A stretch of DNA of 51,150 nt from Fonticula alba ATCC 38817 (Eukaryota > Protista > Nucleariida): NCBI GenBank assembly GCA_000388065.2, contig KB932201.1; one strand, written 5' to 3'. Of the stretch, positions 7,689 to 51,150 are shown in pieces. Under the pieces are notes generated by a model. That model made no database searches. It was not told the DNA's origin and worked only from the letters and a program-made list of their open reading frames with translations. Position numbers and translations under genes: made by a program. How positions within the stretch are numbered: position 1 is the stretch's first letter; the number at the start of each line of letters is the position of its first letter.

Positions 7689-10600
7689 NNNNNNNNNNNN
7701 NNNNNNNNNNNNNNNNNNNNNNNNNNNNNNNNNNNNNNNNNNNNNNNNNNNNNNNNNNNNNNNNNNNNNNNNNNNNNNNNNNNNNNNNNNNNNNNNNNNN
7801 NNNNNNNNNNNNNNNNNNNNNNNNNNNNNNNNNNNNNNNNNNNNNNNNNNNNNNNNNNNNNNNNNNNNNNNNNNNNNNNNNNNNNNNNNNNNNNNNNNNN
7901 NNNNNNNNNNNNNNNNNNNNNNNNNNNNNNNNNNNNNNNNNNNNNNNNNNNNNNNNNNNNNNNNNNNNNNNNNNNNNNNNNNNNGGGGGGGGGGGGGGGG
8001 GAGCAGCTTTCGCTGCTTTCCATTGGGGGCTCCTCTGCTCCCTTTGCAGCCCGGGGCTGGCATGCTGACATTCGGAAACACACATTCATCGCGGCCCCGG
8101 CGGTTAGTATGGGGCTTTGGGTGGGGCCAGCATCTGCCCGGCGGGGCTCGGGAGATGTGTCGGACCAAGGGAGGCCCCTGCCACTGGCGGGCGGGCGGGC
8201 TTGGAACCAGTGGAGGTGAACAGGGCCGGAGGGGGGATTTTCGGGAGAAAGTGCAGCATGGTGGAACTGCGCCTCACCCTTCAAAAACAGGGACCGCCCT
8301 CTGTCGGGATCCGCTGGGAGCATCAAGTGCCCGGCCAGACAAGACCACCGGCCCGGCGCCCGCCCTGACCCTGGCTTTGAGGATCAAAGGGAAGGTCACT
8401 GTGCCAGTTGTCGCACAGGCCAGAGGCGGGGACAAGGGCACCGAGGAACGATATGCTCGCCAGGCGCGGGGCCGCTTCGGACGAACGCGCTGCCCTCCAC
8501 ACAAACACACACACACACACAGACACACAAAACATCAAGAGTGGGGGCCAAAGAAGCATGCAGCCCCGGAACACGGGGCGGGGGTCCCTTGAGCGTGTGC
8601 GTCCTGTTGGGCGGGGAGGGGCATGGGAGCCGCCCTGCCTGGGTGTCTGTCCTGGGCCCGAGCTTGGGCGATCGGGGCTCCGCACCGACCGGGGGCGAGA
8701 TCGAAACACAGGTCGGGGGCAGGCCCGGCACGGGCCCCCGTTACCCGAGGACATCCGCGCGGGCTGGAGACCGTGTTGAGCCGCCAGAGTTACCCGGTTG
8801 CCACGCCATCCACAGAGCAGGGTCCAAAAGGTACACGCAGGGCCAGGGTGGCCCCCTGGGCTCCTCCTGCCAGACCCTCTCCTTTCGGGGAAGAGAAGCC
8901 GAGGGTCGTGGATGCGCACTCGCACCAAGGCCCTTTGATCGGGCATTTAAAATCACACACGCACACATACACACAGGAAGGGCCGCGTCTTTGAGCTGGA
9001 AAGGAGTTAGGGAGAGCGGCAAAGGGAAGTCGGGGGGGGGGGGGGGGAGCATGTCCGCGGCCAGGCGTCGGCCCGTTGCCAGCAGCAGGCACGCTCGAGC
9101 GGGGCACACACCCAGGCGGGTGTGAGATTCCAAGGACAGGCCCAGAAATCTGCCGGGAAAAGCTGGCCAATCCCCTCCTCCCTCCCCTCGGCCTGGCCTG
9201 GCGATCGGACAGGACCTCCCAACAGAAGGTTTCGACAAAAAAAACAGCCCCGAGAAGCCATGCCATCAGGATCCCCGCCCAAAACCACATCGTACACACG
9301 CGCACAGCGGTGCTGGCGACTGCCCGGCCCCGGGGACCGGGATTGGCAAAATATTGCCCAGTCATCCTGCCAGCAGTGGGTCGGGGTCTCAATGAGGGCG
9401 GGACCGGATGCTAATGCATCCCCCCGGCTGCACGCCCTCCGCGAGGCTGGAAATGAGGGACATCATCGAGAAATCCGGCCTCGAGGCCCGGACACAGGGA
9501 CCCGATGCGGACCATCTGCGAGCATGCGCCGGCGCGAAAGCCGGCGAGAGAGAGAGAGAGAGAGAGAGAGAGGGTCAGAGAGGAAGGCAGAACCCAAACA
9601 GGGCGACCCCGGGCGCCGGCGTATCGGCCCACTCTGTGGGATCCCCGAACAACGCGGCCAACACGAGGCCGGCCGAGAGGAGATCGGCCCGAAGACTGGC
9701 CAGACTCAAAGACTGACCAAACGCAAAGACAGACCAACGCCCCCGGGGCCCGGGAAGGCCCATCACTGGGGACACCCCAATAGGGAGAACTGCAAGCAAG
9801 ACGGCATGCCTACCGCCCCCGGCGGAAGAGGGGCCGCGGGTCGGCACCGCCACGCGGTCACGGGGGCCTCGGGCCGGCGCGCGAAAAAAAAAAACACACA
9901 TTTAGTTCTGGAGCAGGGCAGACCCCTTTGACAGAAAATACGCCATAACGACGCCATGGGAGGGCGCCCCCCGCCGCCCGGCCCCGGGCCCCGCTTTCTT
10001 GCCAAGGGGGATGGCGCACGGGCGGCGTCCGCTCGGGTGCCCCCTATTCACACCCAGCGCGCACGCCCGTGGCCTTCCCCGTGCCGCCCAGTCCGGCCCC
10101 GATGGGCTTGGAGTAGCTTGTCGGCACCGACCCGCGCATTAATAACGGTCCTTTCTTTGTTGGCTCCGAGAGGTCCGGAGCCGAGCCCACGCTCGAGTCC
10201 GACTGGGACGGACAGCCCCCAAGAAGGTCCCCCGGCCGCTGGGTAGGTTCGCCCAACCGGTGGACGAAAGGATGGCACACACGCGCCTCCCGGCGGTCCA
10301 TGTGGGGCCGCCCTAGGCGAAACACGTCCCACCCTGGCAGCCATTATCATCCTCTTCTCCATGAAGGTCGTAACACAGGCCCCGGGCCCGGGAAAAGCGG
10401 CCCACGGCCGCTTCGGTCCCGGCCTCCCGGTGCCGACTCGGCATCCCCGCCCCCCTCCTCCGGGCCGCCAGGCGCGGAGCAGCAGCACCTGGCGTCCCGG
10501 ACCGGCAACAGTACACCCGATCCTGCCGCCACAAGCCCCACCCCTCCTCGACACATCGAAAGAACTCACCTGGACGCGTGGGGCTTCCTCGGCCCGGGCC

Positions 10601-15781: not shown

Positions 15782-18700
15782 TGGCTCAAGAGGGGGGGTG
15801 GCAGAGGGGTGAGAGAGGGGCAGCACCAGCGGGGTAACCTCCGAGAGGGGGGCCCCGGCGGGATGGCATGGTTCCGGGGGGGCGGAGGGGGGCTGCTGCG
15901 CGCGCGAGCGTCGTTCGGGTGACCGGGAGTGCTGTTGTGCAGGGGCGGGGATCCTTGGCTGGNNNNNNNNNNNNNNNNNNNNNNNNNNNNNNNNNNNNNN
16001 NNNNNNNNNNNNNNNNNNNNNNNNNNNNNNNNNNNNNNNNNNNNNNNNNNNNNNNNNNNNNNNNNNNNNNNNNNNNNNNNNNNNNNNNNNNNNNNNNNNN
16101 NNNNNNNNNNNNNNNNNNNNNNNNNNNNNNNNNNNNNNNNNNNNNNNNNNNNNNNNNNNNNNNNNNNNNNNNNNNNNNNNNNNNNNNNNNNNNNNNNNNN
16201 NNNNNNNNNNNNNNNNNNNNNNNNNNNNGTCATCACGTCGGGAACGCCAGTCGCGTTCGGGGCCTCGGCGGCGGGGCATGAGCGTGTGCATACATGTATG
16301 GAGGGTAAGTGGCGAGGTGTAAACGCGGGCAGGGGCCGAAAAGATTCGGACCGACACGATCGGCACTCGGCAGGTGGGGAGAGATCCCGGGCGACATACC
16401 ATCAGATTGTCGCGGGCGTGGTTCCGGGGAAAGCCATGGAAAGGGGGAGGGGAGGAAGTGGCGGGGGGAGGGAGGAGGAGGGAGGGGGGAGGGGAGAAGA
16501 GGGAGGGCGGGCGCAAAGGGTGGAAGGGGGCGGCAAACGAGGGGGGGGGGGCCTGATTGCGGGGGATAGGAAAAGGTCTCTTCCCGGTGGGAACGGCACA
16601 GAGAGAGGGATCTCAAATCGATTTGGGCAGGCGGGTGACGGGCCTCGCCCTCCGGCTGTGCCCCGGTGTCGGTCCGGCTCCCGGCGGGTGCACACGCGCC
16701 CACACGCACGGGCGTGAGCTTCAGCCAGGGGTCGGGATGATGCATGTCGCCGGGATGTGTGTGTCTGTACACATCGCATACCAGCACCTTCCCCCGGGAG
16801 GGGGTACGTCTCAAACCCCGATCCCTGGGAACCGGCGCCCGCCTCGGGCACTTTCGCCCCGGGGGGCGGGGCGCGGGGGGGAGAGGGGGGAAACACGTTT
16901 GTTCACCGGCCAGACGGTCAGCACGCCCCTTCCGGAGACCTTCCAGGGCGGGGGGGGGGGGAGACTGCCAGGCGCCGTCTATTTGCGAGGTCGTCTCGAG
17001 GCGCGGGAAGGGCAGAACTCGGGCTCGCTCTCCGGCAAGGGGATACCACTCCGCGCTGGGATCAGGGCGAGCGGCGCGCACGCGCCCCGCCCCGCCCGGA
17101 CAGGGTCCAGAGCTCCCCCCCCCCCTTCCATGCTGGGGGAGGCCCCTGCGGGGAGCTCTCCATGGTGTGCCCCCTCCCCCCGAGGCGGATGTCGCACATG
17201 GATGTGCACGGTGCCCGAACGCGTATGGTGTGTGTGTATGTGCACGGTGTCCGATCCGCGGAGGGGGACCCGGGAAGGGCTGCCCGCATCCGGGAGGTCG
17301 GGGCGTGGCGCGGCGCGGCGCCCCGGTGAGGCACCCCCCGCCCCCCGACCGGGCACATGCACGTTTGCCGGCCGTGTTGCCGCATACGCACCTGGGAAAG
17401 TGTAATTGCAGTGCAAGCCCCTGCAACGATGGGCGCCTGGGAGGGGGGTTGTATGCGGCCGATCCGACGCAACGTGAGAGCCATGCCGACACCACTGGGA
17501 GATGGGCGCTCAGGGTGCNNNNNNNNNNNNNNNNNNNNNNNNNNNNNNNNNNNNNNNNNNNNNNNNNNNNNNNNNNNNNNNNNNNNNNNNNNNNNNNNNN
17601 NNNNNNNNNNNNNNNNNNNNNNNNNNNNNNNNNNNNNNNNNNNNNNNNNNNNNNNNNNNNNNNNNNNNNNNNNNNNNNNNNNNNNNNNNNNNNNNNNNNN
17701 NNNNNNNNNNNNNNNNNNNNNNNNNNNNNNNNNNNNNNNNNNNNNNNNNNNNNNNNNNNNNNNNNNNNNNNNNNNNNNNNNNNNNNNNNNNNNNNNNNNN
17801 NNNNNNNNNNNNNNNNNNNNNNNNNNNNNNNNNNNNNNNNNNNNNNNNNNNNNNNNNNNNNNNNNNNNNNNNNNNNNNNNNNNNNNNNNNNNNNNNNNNN
17901 NNNNNNNNNNNNNNNNNNNNNNNNNNNNNNNNNNNNNNNNNNNNNNNNNNNNNNNNNNNNNNNNNNNNNNNNNNNNNNNNNNNNNNNNNNNNNNNNNNNN
18001 NNNNNNNNNNNNNNNNNNNNNNNNNNNNNNNNNNNNNNGGGCCGGAGGCATCACTTGCGGCCTGTTGATCCACCGTTGGTTGAAAGCCTACGGGACGGGT
18101 ACCTCCCGAGGCGAGCTAAAAGCCCTTGACCCCTGCCTGGGCGCTAGAGGAAGGGGGGCGCGGGCGAGCCGCCGCTAATGACACCAGCCTGCGACCTCCA
18201 GGGCCAGGGTGCCATTCTGGGGTCATGTGCGTTCCCCCGCGGAGGGGCGACGCCGGGTCCTCATCACTGGGGTCCATACGGATGCCAGTGACCGAGCCAC
18301 ATATGATAGCTCCGCACTCGATCCAGGAATCTGGACCCCCACACACGAAGCCAGAACCCCAGATGAAGGCGCAGGGCAGCGGCAGGGGGGGGGGGGGGGG
18401 GGGGGCGGCGCTGGGCGCCGAGTGGTGGACCCGCAGACCCATCATCAGCACACCGTCGAGGGCCCCCCTAAAAAGACACCCCCAGTTCGCGGTCCCAGGA
18501 CCGGCCGGCCGCACCTTGCATCCCTGTGCGCGAGCCACCGTCACACCCCTGTCCCTCTCACAGACGGCACTCTCCCCGCCTTCGTGCGTCCCTCGCCCCG
18601 GGGGAGGCCCGGCAGAGTTGCCGTATCTCTTGGGCGGATTCGACTTTCCGCGCCCCACCTCCCATCGAGTGTCACCTCTCCAGTGAAGTGCCCCATGCTT

Positions 18701-20188: not shown

Positions 20189-21306
20189 TTAGAACTTCAT
20201 GGCGTGGGGGAACTGGCCCTTGCTCAGGGTGAACTTGGCACCAAGGTAACCCTTGAGGAGGGGGGTCTTGTTGATGGCGGCGAGGAGGGCCTTGTCAGTC
20301 TCCTTCTGGTCGGCAATGCGGCCAGCGTCGATCTGGGTGGTCTGTGGGCCGGGACACGCGCGTGGACGTGCAGAGGAGGAGGAGGAGGAGGAAGAGCGGG
20401 TTTGTGTGGTTAGTGAAAGGGAGCGGCGGCCGAGAGCGTGACGCGCGAGGAGGAGAGAGGCGGGGACGCGCGTGCATGCGCGCGCGCGCACGACGCCGCC
20501 CACCACACGGGCGACAGAGAACACAACACACGCACCTCCTTGTGCTGAGCAAAGAAGTCCTCGGCACCACGGGTCTTGGTGTCAGCGGGGCGCTTGAAGT
20601 ACTCGTCGGTGAACTTCTCGGTGTTGACGCCAGAGATATCGACCTTGGTGGAGGTGGCGATGACGTAGGCGGGGTTCACACGGCGGAGGGGGACACCGTT
20701 GACCTTGAAGGGGCCAGAGACGACCAGGAGGCCGGAGTTGAGCTGCTTGAGGCAGACAACGCGGGTACCCTTGAAGCGGCCGGCAAGGAGGATCAGGACG
20801 GCACCAGGAACGATGGAAGCGCGCTGTGTGTCATGAAGGGCAAAAAAGCACAGACAGGGGGAGTGGTTAGCGAGTCGCCGGGTGAGAAAGGAGCCCCTCC
20901 CGGTCCAGGCGCGCGCAAAGGGCCAAACAACGAGGAGAGGCACATCCGCATACGGATGCAGGAATGCGAAAGTCACATCCGACTATCGGAGAGGGGCAGC
21001 CGAGATGGGGGGAATTGGTACGCACGACCTTGGCGGGCTTGTTCTTCTTGTGGTTCTTGGCGAGGGTCTTGGACTTGCGGCAGTCAGCGGCGAGGCTGCG
21101 AGCGACCGGGAACTGAGCCATGGACTATGATGGGGAGGGAGGAGTGGTATGGACACGTGGGGGACATTGTAAGAGACACGGCAGAAGGAGGGGTCAGTAA
21201 GAGGGTGTGCGCGCGCTTCTGACGAAGGACAAGAGAGAGAGATGCAACAGCAAGAGGGAGGGACTTTGCTTGTGGGGAAACGCACGGTGACAGTGGGGAT
21301 AGTCAT
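20189..21306 (-). CDS. RPL6: 60S ribosomal protein eL6 (L6), 186 aa, four coding exons plus an inferred 5'-UTR intron
   Basis: Exons 21286..21306, 21026..21124, 20536..20823 and 20189..20341 splice in phase 0 (GTGCGT donors, YAG acceptors, CTRAC branch points). They give [92 protein letters not shown], the eL6 signature. Inferred 5'-UTR intron 21308..22016. Confidence 0.97.
20941..20982 (-). promoter_or_regulatory. Intronic self-complementary element shared with the RPL3 intron (RPL6 copy)
   Basis: Sense strand reads TCGGATGTGA ctttcgca TTCCTGCATCCG tatg CGGATGTG inside intron 20824..21025. The near-identical copy is at 37727..37755. Function is inferred, not shown. Confidence 0.6.
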
Positions 21307-22653
21307 TCTGGCGATGCCGAATCGAGACAACGGGGGTGGGAGGACGAGAAAGAGGGCGGAGGAAGGGGGACACCGAAATGAGGAGTGTTAGCTGAGCATG
21401 ATCCCGCCATGGCGAGGGTGGTGGCACTCATTTGTGAGTGCCCGGGTGCGACGCAGGACACCATCATACGATCGGGTGCGGAGAGGGGGGGGAGGGCGCA
21501 ACGAGGAGCCTCTGGCACAATGCACACATCCATACACGCGAGTGCGTTGGCCCCCCCCCCCACAACACTCGGCCCCTGACCTCGGGGCCAGTCTCTCTCT
21601 CCCTCTCGAGTCTGATCCGCCCATCGGTGGTGTACACACACACACGGAGGCCGGTGGGCGGCGCCCGGCCCTTCGCTGTCTCCGGCAGCAACATGTCGCC
21701 CGATGCGCTGGTGGAGGGGAGGAAGAGAAGGGAGGGCGTCCCCGGGGCAGACACCGAGCATGAGGGCGCGCGCGCGCACACACACACACACCACCGGCCC
21801 ACAGCGATGGCATGAGTCTAGCGCGAGACCGGGACTCAGGGCAACGAGCGCGCCCATCGGACCAGGGAGGCACACACGTAGCGTGCAGACGCAGAGAGCC
21901 CGAGAGAGAGAGAGAGGGCAGGGCAAAGGAGGGGGCGAGGTGTGGGGTATACAAGAGGAAAGGGCGAAAGTAGGCACTGGAAGGGGGGGGAGAGGGAGGA
22001 AGGGGAAGAGACGCACTTCTCCTTTCTGATTTGACGGGTGAATATACCAAACAGACCAGATGAGTAGAGGCCTCTGCTCTGAGGAGGCAGCCTCCACCAG
22101 GGGCCCACTTCTAACAACTCATCAGCCCCCTGAACCGTGCTTCTCTGCTGGCGGCTGCCCTGGGCCACCCAAGGTGCCCGTTCGCCTCCCCCCCCCCCTC
22201 CCCCCCCCTGCGCCTGTTCCCGCCCCCCTCTCCCACACACACCCCGCGCCTCGGCCTGCCTCCCCCACTCTCTGGGGGGGGGGGGGAGGGGGGGAGGCCC
22301 GGCCGCGCACCCCGCTCCCTTGGCCACCATGTATGCCTGGCGAAAGGGCGGTCGCGAGCGCCCGAGAAAGAGAGCGGCGGACGCGGCCGGAATCCGCCCT
22401 CTCTCTCTCTCCCTGTGCCCTGTTGCCCCCCCCCTCCCCCCCCCGTCGGGAGGCCCTTGCCTGAGGTGGGGCTGGTGGACCCGAGACAGGGACACCCTGT
22501 TAGCCTTCCCCGGCCCCGAGAGTTCCCCGACACGCACCACACACGAGCCCGGACCAGGATGAGAAGGATGCGCGTGAGCACATGCCCGTGTCTGCCCCGC
22601 CCCCCCCCCCCTCCCCGCCCTCTGTATCGCCTGGCCCTGCCACGCCTCCAAGT

Positions 22654-23480
22654 ATGGATCCCACCGCCGCTCCACGGGCGGGGGGCGCCCCCCTCCTCAG
22701 GAAGGCCACATCTCGAAAAGTGCCGAGTCTCGTCTCCACGAACTCGCCCGTTTGCGCGGCGGCTGGATGCGCCCGGAGCACCAACCGGGACCAACCAACG
22801 CTCCTCCGCCCCCACCAAGGCATCCTCTCCCGCCGGCCCACCTTCAGAGAAACGCACGGAGGTACCATGTCGGTCGCAAGTCAGCCAGCTCCAGCTCCAG
22901 CTCCAGCTCCAGCTCAAGTACGCGTCCTGCACCGCGCCCCCCTTCCGTGTGTCCTGCCCCGGCCGCATCTGGGGAGAGGGATCCGCCACGCTCCGGCGAG
23001 AGGACCCCACGCATCGACATACCACTGGATAAGTGAAGTGTGTGTGGAAGGACACGTGTGTGGTGCGTACTTTCGGCCTGTCCAGGGAGCGCGTTTTTGA
23101 TCTCTCCCCCCCAAAACGTCTGGCAACACGCTCCCCCCTCCAAGGAACCAATGCTTGAGCTCGCTGGGGCGACGCTGAAGGACGGCCCCCGATCTGCTGG
23201 CCCTACGGATGGAAATACATGCAAGGAGGAGGAATGTGGCTTTCTGGCCTCTTTATCCTCCGCCCCCCGTTGTATGTTCATACACGGGAAAAAGGGCCGG
23301 CGGGCTGGCTCAGGCCTTGCACCCTCGAGGGGTGAACCTTGGCCGTGGAGAAATGGAGCGCGGTGCGTACCCCCCCCCCCCCGCCGCCCCGCTCGCACCT
23401 TCACCCGGGTGTGTATGTGTGCGGACAGCGGCCTGCCTGGTCCTCGAAGGGGGAAGACCCGCGCGCTCTCGAAGGGTTAA
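22654..23480 (+). CDS. Hypothetical two-exon protein (~200 aa), no recognised domain
   Basis: Exons 22654..22917 and 23145..23480 join in phase 0 through a GTACGC..AAG intron with a pyrimidine tract. AATAAA at 23569-23574, about 90 nt after the TAA. No homology recognised. Confidence 0.45.
22885..22914 (+). repeat. (CCAGCT)x5 hexamer repeat encoding PAPAPA in the hypothetical gene
   Basis: ccagctccagctccagctccagctccagct. Confidence 0.85.
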
Positions 23481-35533: not shown

Positions 35534-37298
35534 GTAGAGGGGGGCGGCACTGCGCGAAGTAGCAGCGGCAGTCGTGGCACGCGGACATGATGGCGGGGGG
35601 AATTGGAAGGCGTGAGATCGCGCAAGGGGCACCAAGGACGGGCTTCCCTCCTCCTGTGCCCTCCCCCTTCCCATCCTGCCACATGCCTGGCCCGTTGCAC
35701 GAAGCGCCCTGACCCGACGCGCCCCCGCCCGCACACAATAATCTACCACCTTCTTGTAGCAGCCTGCTGTTGGTCCTCCAAACCGGGGGGTGGAGTGGGA
35801 CCGGGGGGGGGGGGGGGTCCGTGGGGGGGCAGAGCAGGTCGGTTGGCGGGCGGGTGGGAGGAGGCAAGGCGAATGGAGGGGGGCGGTCGAGTGGGGCCTT
35901 TCCGCGCGTTTGGGCCCCCTCGCCCGGGGCACGAAAGCGGGAAAATGCTCGTGGACACGTTTGTCTCCCAACTCCCCATCGCCGAGCGAGCCCCTCAGGG
36001 GGGTTGGCCCGGCTTCCTCGGCATGTTCTCGGTTAACCATTCCGATCTGCACCCTGGGTTAATCGGACCGCAGGTGCTCAACTTCGGGCACTCCTTGGCC
36101 ACGATATTAAAAGGCTATTAAATCTTTTTTATAATCATAAAGTGCGGATCCTGCTTTTGCCTCTTTTGTGGGCAGCCACCCGACGCTGGGCAGGAGGGTC
36201 TTGCGCCATGTGCCTGTTTTTCGCTCATCCGAAGCTAACCCCCGGGGCTCCGCAGCGGGCGATTCCGGGCCGAGTTGCCGTGGTGGTGCGCGCTGGGGTG
36301 GGTGCTCTCGATGGACAGCAGGGACCTCTGCAAGTGTGGGTGTATGTTGGGGGGACCGCCTTTCCGCCTTCTGCCAGGGACCGGGGGGAGGGCGTGACGG
36401 AGGCCCGGGTCGGTCGTCCGGACTCCGGCACGCTGAGGGATCCCGGCATCAGGCCACGGCATCCGGTGGGACTTGCGCTCGGCTGGATGGCCCCGCACAG
36501 AGCAATCTGTGCCCTGTCAGTGCCTGCATTTGCGTGATCCTGGGTGCGTTTGTATTTGTGTGTGTGTGTGTGTGTGNNNNNNNNNNNNNNNNNNNNNNNN
36601 NNNNNNNNNNNNNNNNNNNNNNNNNNNNNNNNNNNNNNNNNNNNNNNNNNNNNNNNNNNNNNNNNNNNNNNNNNNNNNNNNNNNNNNNNNNNNNNNNNNN
36701 NNNNNNNNNNNNNNNNNNNNNNNNNNNNNNNNNNNNNNNNNNNNNNNNNNNNNNNNNNNNNNNNNNNNNNNNNNNNNNNNNNNNNNNNNNNNNNNNNNNN
36801 NNNNNNNNNNNGGGGGGGGGGGGGGGGAGGGCAGGGGATGTGTGCCCCTGCGTCCGGTTGGGAGTTGTACACAATGTCCAACCAGGGGCAAGGGCGAGGG
36901 TTCTTCCTCTCGCGAGGCCGAGCCGTCGTCCTGGGAGCGGGTGCCGTGTGTGCGCGTGTGCGTGTGCGCGGCGCGCGGCTGGTGGCCCGCCCCCGGGAGA
37001 GGGGGAGAGGGGGGTGGTCTTGTGCGCCGGCCTCTTGGCGCCGGGCGCGCGCCTGGCGGGGGCGCAGAGGGCATGGGCTCGTGGCCCCCCCCCCCCCGTT
37101 TCCCCCCAGGCTCGCCCGGCCCTCCTCCGGGGGGGGGGGGCGGAGGGGGTGTGTGTGTGTGCGGAGCGGGCGCAGAACTCCCAGGGACGAGGAGGGTGCC
37201 TTGATGTGGAGCCAGTGTGGTGTCCGATGCCCCAGGCTGTCTCCCTCTTCCGTTTGCGCTTTGAGTTTGTTTTCATTCCGAATCGCAGTCGAATCGAG

Positions 37299-48643: not shown

Positions 48644-48805
48644 GACGATTGTGGCATTCTTTCGTTTGTATTTTTACAACCCATCTCCAGAGCAGCAGCA
48701 GCACCGGGCTCAGGGCAGGGAAAGGGGGACAGGAGGGGGGATATATGTGTATGTCTGCGTATGTGCATGTGTGAAGCAAGGCCGGTACAGGGGAGGGAGA
48801 GGGGG
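48547..48805 (+). repeat. 259-bp segment duplicated at 50894..51150; its last 35 bp also occur at 45669..45703
   Basis: Identical by eye except (AC)19 vs (AC)18. Two of the three copies begin directly after an N-gap. Confidence 0.95.
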
Positions 48806-50947: not shown

Positions 50948-50988
<41 letters not shown>

Positions 50989-51150
50989 GACGATTGTGGC
51001 ATTCTTTCGTTTGTATTTTTACAACCCATCTCCAGAGCAGCAGCAGCACCGGGCTCAGGGCAGGGAAAGGGGGACAGGAGGGGGGATATATGTGTATGTC
51101 TGCGTATGTGCATGTGTGAAGCAAGGCCGGTACAGGGGAGGGAGAGGGGG
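50894..51150 (+). repeat. Second copy of 48547..48805 (runs to the window end)
   Basis: Direct sequence identity with a shorter (AC)18 tract. Confidence 0.95.

Follow-up and report, generated by a model that had tools for sequence, protein, structure and literature searches.

Yeasts, animals and plants co-regulate their ~80 ribosomal protein (RP) genes through DNA motifs that differ from lineage to lineage, and Myb-type telomere-binding proteins regulate RP genes in fungi and plants. In budding yeast, RP introns also carry stem-loops, which include the RPL30 kink-turn, the hairpins of RPL22B and RPS14B, and the structures in RPS22B and RPL18A that are cleaved by Rnt1. Where elements are common to different RP genes of other eukaryotes, they are to our knowledge DNA sites in nearly every case, and we know of no eukaryote in which an intronic RNA regulon element across non-homologous RP genes has been described. 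Likewise, we are aware of nothing known about RP co-regulation in nucleariids, the sister lineage of fungi.

In fission yeast the HomolD box (CAGTCACA / TGTGACTG) is an RP core promoter element that is bound by Rrn7 (PMC10253590; PMC5769750), while in Candida a telomere repeat, GGTGTACGGATGT/C, is bound by Rap1 (PMC6510891). In plants the intron-mediated-enhancement signal TTNGATYTG is present in several copies; its activity is confined to transcribed sequence no more than ~1 kb from the start, and it may act either as DNA or as RNA (bioRxiv 10.1101/269852). Here we compare with these systems an element that is held in common by introns of two RP genes of Fonticula alba.

The element lies in spliced introns of RPL6 and RPL3

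The window analysed is a single 51,150-nt stretch of the F. alba assembly GCA_000388065.2 (scaffold KB932201.1, ~1,721,762-1,772,911), and positions given below are those of the window. Its only two RP genes are eL6/RPL6 and uL3/RPL3, both of which hold the element in an intron. The product of the RPL6 gene is annotated as '50S ribosomal protein L6e [Fonticula alba]' (P0122), and the RPL3 open reading frame clusters with XP_009492514.1, '60S ribosomal protein L3 [Fonticula alba]', with its locus on KB932201.1 and an annotated gene of 1942 nt for 418 amino acids.

In RPL6 the host intron is on the minus strand at 20824..21025 (202 nt, GTGCGT...CTAAC...CAG), where an RNA contig connects 20823 directly with 21026, and the distance of the element from the 5' splice site of this intron is 43-84 nt. 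A further minus-strand intron in the 5' leader (21125..21285, 161 nt; RNA contig joining 21124 to 21286) is without the element, and since it is spliced upstream, the host intron is intron 2 of the transcript and not intron 1. Both joints are spanned by one contig, with a depth of 902, from an RNA run of Fonticula dated 2012; the contig contains zero intron words, and upstream of the leader intron the transcript has a long 5' exon that takes up at least 511 nt of the contig. Neither a retained intron nor intron-derived RNA was seen in the RPL6 RNA contigs, and the host intron is efficiently spliced.

The RPL3 copy lies in intron 1 on the plus strand at 37302..37986 (685 nt, ATG/GTAAGT...CTAAC...TAG/TCT, with slashes at the splice junctions), and is separated by ~415 nt from the 5' and by ~230 nt from the 3' splice site. 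This intron is annotated, its removal is required by the universally conserved N-terminus M/SHRKF, and in RNA runs X12-X14 words of the RPL3 locus were present only at an exon-sized share. We also considered the start of contig L002 at 37684 as an internal transcription start and rejected it, as the word shares of the RNA runs are at odds with an RNA origin of L002.

Both copies share two arms, extra CGGATGT cores and orientation

Pattern searching of the 51-kb window for the bipartite sequence TCGGATGTGA-N7/8-TTCNTGCATCCG returned exactly two occurrences. The RPL6 copy, established by direct reading and pattern searches, is on the minus strand at 20953..20982 (sense 20982..20953) and reads TCGGATGTGA-ctttcgca-TTCCTGCATCCG, while the RPL3 copy, located by pattern searches, is on the plus strand at 37727..37755 and reads TCGGATGTGA-aatgcaa-TTCATGCATCCG. 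Both are sense-oriented relative to the host gene, with an identical left-arm 10-mer, a right arm that agrees at 11 of 12 positions, and a spacer of 8 nt in RPL6 and 7 nt in RPL3. Every sequence detail given in the initial annotation, which had reported the same ~30-nt element in two RP introns, proved correct on direct reading and in pattern searches. Identity between the two genes is 22/23 across the arms, compared with ~2/7 and a length difference in the spacer and ~50% in the flanks. That the arms are so nearly identical beside a diverged spacer and diverged flanks implies that they are under selective constraint, irrespective of how the two copies arose.

Each gene also has extra direct copies of the core, as had been stated for both. 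In RPL6 the extra copy is CGGATGTG at 20941..20948 on the minus strand, 4 nt (tatg) past the right arm, and in RPL3 it is CGGATGT at 37718..37724 on the plus strand, 10 nt upstream of the left arm. RPL3 has in addition a degenerate direct copy, CCGATGTG (37753..37760, plus strand), which overlaps the end of the right arm; its counterpart in the alignment is the ATGTG within the extra copy of RPL6, and ATGTG also comes immediately after the RPL3 core. All four direct cores (4/4) are CGGATGT and both inverted cores (2/2) are CGGATGCA, a systematic difference at positions 7-8 (TG in direct and CA in inverted copies), and the inverted arm is thus more than a further copy of a single DNA site. The spacing between the inverted cores differs by 1 bp between the genes (17 vs 16).

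Similarity between the two introns spans ~85 nt, made up of an upstream TTCYCCCCCWTCTCG pyrimidine block, the core, and a loose GCCTCTC..GTTGTYTG block downstream. The pyrimidine block is TTCCCCCCATCTCGG in RPL6 (21000..21014, minus strand) and aligns with TTCTCCCCCTTCTCGCC in RPL3 (37685..37701, plus strand); base composition alone may be behind this upstream similarity. The loose downstream match that had been proposed is likewise present, as GCCTCTCCTCGTTGTTTG in RPL6 (20924..20941, minus strand) and GCCTCTCTGTTGTCTG in RPL3 (37778..37793, plus strand). The ~50% identity outside the core is little above that of an optimised alignment of pyrimidine-rich intron sequence. A coding reading of the shared block was rejected, since the peptides are unconserved and the 1-nt difference in the spacer shifts the frame.

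The resemblance exceeds chance

In the 51-kb window the left arm occurs exactly only at the RPL6 and RPL3 sites, the right arm has no third site with one mismatch allowed, and half-patterns with one mismatch gave no further full element. The hexamer CGGATG itself is not enriched in the window, with 36 sites compared with ~35 expected from composition; three such sites within 45 nt are found only at the RPL6 and RPL3 elements.

Local alignment of the two introns scored 42 sense against sense and 20 in antisense, while 1000 shuffled-intron alignments scored 22 +/- 2.8 with a maximum of 35. When the RPL6 intron was compared with the window in ~2300 overlapping pieces of 202 nt, taken from both strands, the best partner was the RPL3 element (score 42) and the next unrelated segment scored 29. 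The reciprocal query was disregarded because it was swamped by the poly-C and CAG tracts of the RPL3 intron. The chance of the best match of one copy landing sense-wise in the other RP intron is ~685/102,300, or 0.7%. Comparison of the 5' regions of RPL6 and RPL3 for common 9-mers gave chance-level matches only.

We also built a covariance model, R1, from the 39-nt core of the two copies and searched the window with filters off. Only these two copies were recovered, at 50.2 bits (RPL6) and 47.6 bits (RPL3), and the next-best match, at 13.3 bits, was the antisense of the RPL3 copy; E-values were ~1e-11 for both copies and 0.3 for the next match, from a model trained on those same copies. Together the pattern and covariance-model searches bear out the earlier by-eye impression that the element is absent from the other introns and the intergenic DNA of the window.

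Across all JGI metagenome contigs the strict pattern gave only 2 matches, neither of which matches the window, and which is about the number expected by chance on a rough estimate. One is a GC-rich stretch resembling bacterial coding sequence, and the other lies in a 40%-GC contig. A fortuitous resemblance would be favoured by the post hoc nature of the discovery and by a genome that is GC-rich and of low complexity; against it, both the shuffle null and the empirical window null are exceeded, the covariance-model E-values are separated from the next match as above, although the model derives from the same two copies, and the strict pattern is scarce in metagenomes. These results effectively refute chance, which we regard as extremely improbable, and the two copies are too alike to have arisen by it.

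In the protein database the next-best sequences are 77-79% identical for RPL3 and 67% for RPL6. The metagenome runs X10, X15 and X16, which cover only part of the locus, are from the same strain, at low coverage and with 0-1 differences, and the Logan contigs that carry the RPL3 open reading frame (L001 and L002) are colinear to the genome, with no new variation across the element. The intron of Rozella RPL3 is 29 nt long and sits at another position, and RPL3 of the chytrid Gaertneriomyces has no 5' intron; the CGGATG cluster is absent from both genes, an absence that is uninformative at such distance.

A common hairpin is predicted but is not the preferred fold in RPL6

Using RNAalifold on the two sequences we obtained a consensus hairpin in which CGGAUGU pairs with GCAUCCG through six Watson-Crick pairs and one U.G pair, followed by a 2-nt bulge and then by GA/UC. 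The variable positions of the core coincide with the loop and bulge of this hairpin, and the G-C and A-U pairs on the far side of the bulge account for the otherwise odd conservation of TGA and TTC. All eight stem pairs are invariant between RPL6 and RPL3, so the stems, being identical in both copies, provide no covariation.

The common hairpin has a predicted energy of -7.4 kcal/mol in RPL6 and -9.4 kcal/mol in RPL3. In RPL3 it is the minimum-free-energy fold (-14.6 kcal/mol for 37 nt, z -2.75), while in RPL6 the preferred fold instead pairs GCAUCCG with the downstream CGGATGTG copy, in a hairpin of 7-8 bp with a UAUG loop. Wider regions had z-scores of -1.3 to -1.5, which gives an overall range of -1.3 to -2.75. 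The competing CGGAUGU copy is thus upstream in RPL3 and downstream in RPL6, and what stays constant is a single GCAUCCG arm accompanied by at least two CGGAUGU arms, rather than a fixed architecture. The RNA structure that had been suggested is a weak reading: the common hairpin is modest, and in RPL6 it is out-competed.

Described elements do not account for the sequence

Rfam gave no match at gathering thresholds across the whole window; at E<=10 the RPL6 intron likewise gave none, and the RPL3 intron only spurious miRNA matches. In the literature searched, no relevant connection appeared between Fonticula RP genes and either introners or a motif within introns. The view that the element belongs to no described family was borne out in both searches.

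The resemblance to HomolD that had been pointed out did not survive comparison. The likeness is that of a short motif common to non-homologous RP genes in a fungal relative, with TGTGACT in the RPL6 copy; however, agreement is 7/8 in RPL6 (TGTGACTt) and only 5/8 in RPL3 (TGTGAaat), and the Fonticula element is bipartite, with an inverted repeat. Furthermore, HomolD lies at about -60, whereas the Fonticula element is in a spliced intron hundreds of nt downstream, and in RPL6 at least 610 nt of transcribed exon and one earlier intron precede it, which does not fit a core promoter position. Identity with HomolD thus fails on the RPL3 sequence and on position in both genes.

For the Rap1 site, GGTGT-N2/3-GG(G/A)TGT, only the second half-site was found: the CGGATGT/C core is identical to the second half of the Candida repeat (PMC6510891), but the GGTGT first half-site is missing and the Fonticula copies are 10-33 nt apart, not 7-8. 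By analogy, the half-site match is a lead toward a Myb-type factor and not a test.

Among RNA elements, the Fonticula sequence has neither the tandem G.A motif of a kink-turn nor an AGNN loop, and a kink-turn of the RPL30 / L7Ae type was rejected by eye, since the 3' strand has CA, not GA, beside the stem (UGCA-UCCG). A box C/D or H/ACA snoRNA was likewise rejected, with no relevant Rfam match and the boxes absent by eye, and no conserved alternative 3' or 5' splice site was seen by eye in the element. Introner-like elements and MITEs also make introns of unrelated genes resemble each other, with the shared sequence oriented as transcription is; here, however, there are two copies in 51 kb, both in RP genes, and the similarity is internal, without the splice sites. 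A dispersed repeat or introner was rejected, as the window has no further copy, in line with the earlier claim at this scale, and the similarity covers only ~85 internal nt.

Discussion

Since its two copies are too similar for chance, the element is probably a common control element, as judged from sequence. It may be a cis-element of an RP regulon, a reading that rests on n=2, with the element in 2/2 RP genes of the window and nowhere else there. The explanation that we tentatively prefer is that of a selectively maintained, RP-gene-specific cis-element, most likely acting on the sense-strand pre-mRNA. The arms CGGAUGUGA and UUCNUGCAUCCG would fold into a short hairpin, the stem sequence of which would be recognised by a common trans-factor, and the one or two extra CGGAUGU copies would compete for the single GCAUCCG arm. 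Such an element could couple the splicing, or the fate of the unspliced RNA, of several RP transcripts to one regulator; action as RNA, binding of the factor and presence beyond the two genes are all parts of the model that we infer. It is doubtful that this extends so far as a regulon-wide RNA switch, in which most Fonticula RP pre-mRNAs would carry, in a 5'-proximal intron, a sense-only hairpin whose CGGAUGU arms compete, with one trans-factor setting splicing or decay of the RP set by growth state.

Several observations favour action as RNA. Both copies found on the two strands of the 51 kb are sense and in introns of the only two RP genes, and the ~0.7% chance of a best match falling sense-wise in the other gene's intron points the same way, as does the contrast of arms (22/23) with spacer (~2/7) and flanks (~50%). 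The positions that vary are exactly those of the loop and bulge of the consensus hairpin, which is the minimum-free-energy fold in RPL3 (z -2.75), and the position at which CGGATGCA departs from CGGATGT would be a U.G wobble on the RNA and a mismatch on the antisense. The element is also distant from a core promoter: in RPL6 at least 360 nt of transcript precede it, and in RPL3 it lies ~490 nt downstream of the annotated start. On the other side, the RPL6 hairpin (-7.4 kcal/mol) loses to pairing with the downstream copy, so that no single structure is conserved, the stems lack covariation, and z-scores of the wider regions are just -1.3 to -1.5. The same orientation in 2/2 copies would arise by coincidence in 50% of cases, the RNA contigs lack intron retention and intron-derived RNA, and n is 2. 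Because the hairpin is modest and is not the preferred RPL6 fold, action as RNA and action as DNA are nearly equally likely.

Action as DNA is accordingly a serious possibility, in which a sequence-specific factor, for example of Myb type, would bind a cluster that packs three CGGATG(T/C) sites, two of them direct and one inverted, into 45 bp. The cluster would form a promoter-proximal intragenic enhancer, similar to intron-mediated-enhancement signals or to the telo-boxes of plant RP genes. Each element has three cores, in both orientations, and the differing placement of the extra copies in the two genes suggests selection for copy number and not for one fixed fold. These are also the sole three-site clusters of the window, despite no overall CGGATG enrichment, and, as far as is known, RP regulons elsewhere are driven by DNA sites. 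The ~0.5-0.9 kb between transcript start and element is within the range of intron-mediated enhancement (bioRxiv 10.1101/269852), and beyond the half-site match with the Rap1-bound repeat, the RPL6 inverted copy has the 11-mer TACGGATGCAG in common with one Candida repeat oligonucleotide (PMC6510891). A set of equivalent DNA sites is harder to reconcile with the systematic TG versus CA difference at positions 7-8 of direct and inverted copies, with an inverted-core spacing that is off by 1 bp (17 vs 16), with conservation that is asymmetric beyond the hexamer, with the same orientation of the whole module in both genes, and with the lack of copies upstream of either gene. Descent from a common origin with no present function, as a mobile-element or introner-like fragment or an ectopic intron-to-intron copy, is unlikely. 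It would explain why the similarity is a block of ~85 nt and not a single short site, and why an imperfect palindrome with a 2-nt bulge recurs in both copies, as descent predicts; moreover, the RPL3 intron position is absent from Rozella and a chytrid, and the introns may therefore be young. Yet flanks and spacer are near saturation with one change in 23 arm positions, for which selection is needed, there is no third copy in 51 kb with about 20 further introns (a count taken from the initial annotation), no terminal repeats or target-site duplication are seen by eye in the flanks, and the similarity stops short of the splice sites. Less probable still is an intron-hosted small non-coding RNA, snoRNA-like or otherwise processed, that is freed after splicing: snoRNAs are common in RP introns and ~85 nt is a compatible block length, but Rfam gave no relevant match in either intron, neither block has a RUGAUGA, CUGA, H or ACA box by eye, and the RPL6 RNA contigs contain no intron words, although poly(A)-type libraries would miss small RNAs.

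The element described here is real and constrained, new in sequence and, being intronic, unusual in position. With two instances, it is a lead rather than a result. As an element common to RP introns, it would offer a first handle on the RP regulon in Fonticula. If it acts as RNA, in the manner that we tentatively prefer, it would represent an unusual post-transcriptional coordination of RP genes, while if it acts as DNA it would be another case of promoter-proximal intragenic control, comparable to intron-mediated enhancement.

Both possibilities can be compared with known systems. The stem-loops of budding yeast RP introns are RNA structures in RP pre-mRNA that control splicing or decay, and Rnt1 is one factor that acts on the introns of two different RP genes; unlike those gene-specific sequences, the stem sequence in Fonticula is itself common to both genes. 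The plant signal TTNGATYTG is similarly short and multi-copy, and lies in introns close to the promoters of highly expressed genes (bioRxiv 10.1101/269852). It differs in having no inverted arm, and TCGGATGTG matches the plant signal at only 7/9 positions, which falls short of it by sequence. The distance from the annotated and contig starts fits, and there are 2-3 direct copies per gene. By analogy, the plant intron-mediated-enhancement signal is the nearest functional analogue of the Fonticula element.

Gene models and the 5' leader of RPL6

The public protein models of both ribosomal-protein genes begin at in-frame upstream ATG codons in their leaders, which places 24 amino acids ahead of MSHRKF in RPL3 (37227-37301) and MTIPTVTS ahead of MAQFPV in RPL6 (21284-21306). 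These N-terminal extensions are probably annotation artefacts, because orthologues begin at MSHRKF. For RPL6, an mRNA contig defines a 161-nt intron in the 5' leader (21125-21285, minus strand) and, upstream of it, a 5' exon (21286-21500 and beyond, minus strand) that extends at least 511 nt past the leader-intron join. By the standards of ribosomal-protein genes this exon is exceptionally long, unless the contig has merged with an unannotated upstream transcript; the minus-strand ORFs at 21306-23151 gave no Pfam match.

Assembly features and occurrence of the locus in other runs

Scaffold gaps account for 1928 N in the window, with N runs at ~7690-7890, near 15900-16140, near 36630-36840 and at 48372-48546. 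The two copies of a 202-nt direct repeat (48604-48805 and 50949-51150) are 100% identical; the repeat extends to the end of the window and adjoins an assembly gap, and may therefore be an assembly duplicate. Homopolymer runs of G and C, 15-25 nt in length, are dispersed over the entire window, and the RPL3 intron holds long poly-C and (CAG)n tracts (37330-37365 and 37400-37430).

Sequencing runs whose labels name soil, sediment or sludge metagenomes also contain the locus, and so do the 2025 DNA runs assigned to another organism, 'organism B' (taken together, runs X5-X10, X15-X18, X25 and X26). Between the reference and the three metagenome runs compared at the RPL6 locus (X10, X15 and X16) there were 0-1 differences. 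The explanation is either a wide, clonal distribution of F. alba or cross-contamination of these runs.

Similarities to the intron element

Within the unannotated 4.4 kb separating the IPK gene from RPL6, where ORFs had no Pfam match, lies CGGATGTCGCACATGGATGTGCAC (17186-17209, plus strand), which carries two GGATGT cores in direct orientation, 14 nt apart; it could be weakly related to the intron element or could have arisen by chance. The inverted arm of the RPL6 copy (20953-20965) reads ATACGGATGCAGG on the plus strand, and shares the 11-mer TACGGATGCAG with a Candida maltosa telomere-repeat oligonucleotide that is bound by Rap1 (PMC6510891, Table 1).
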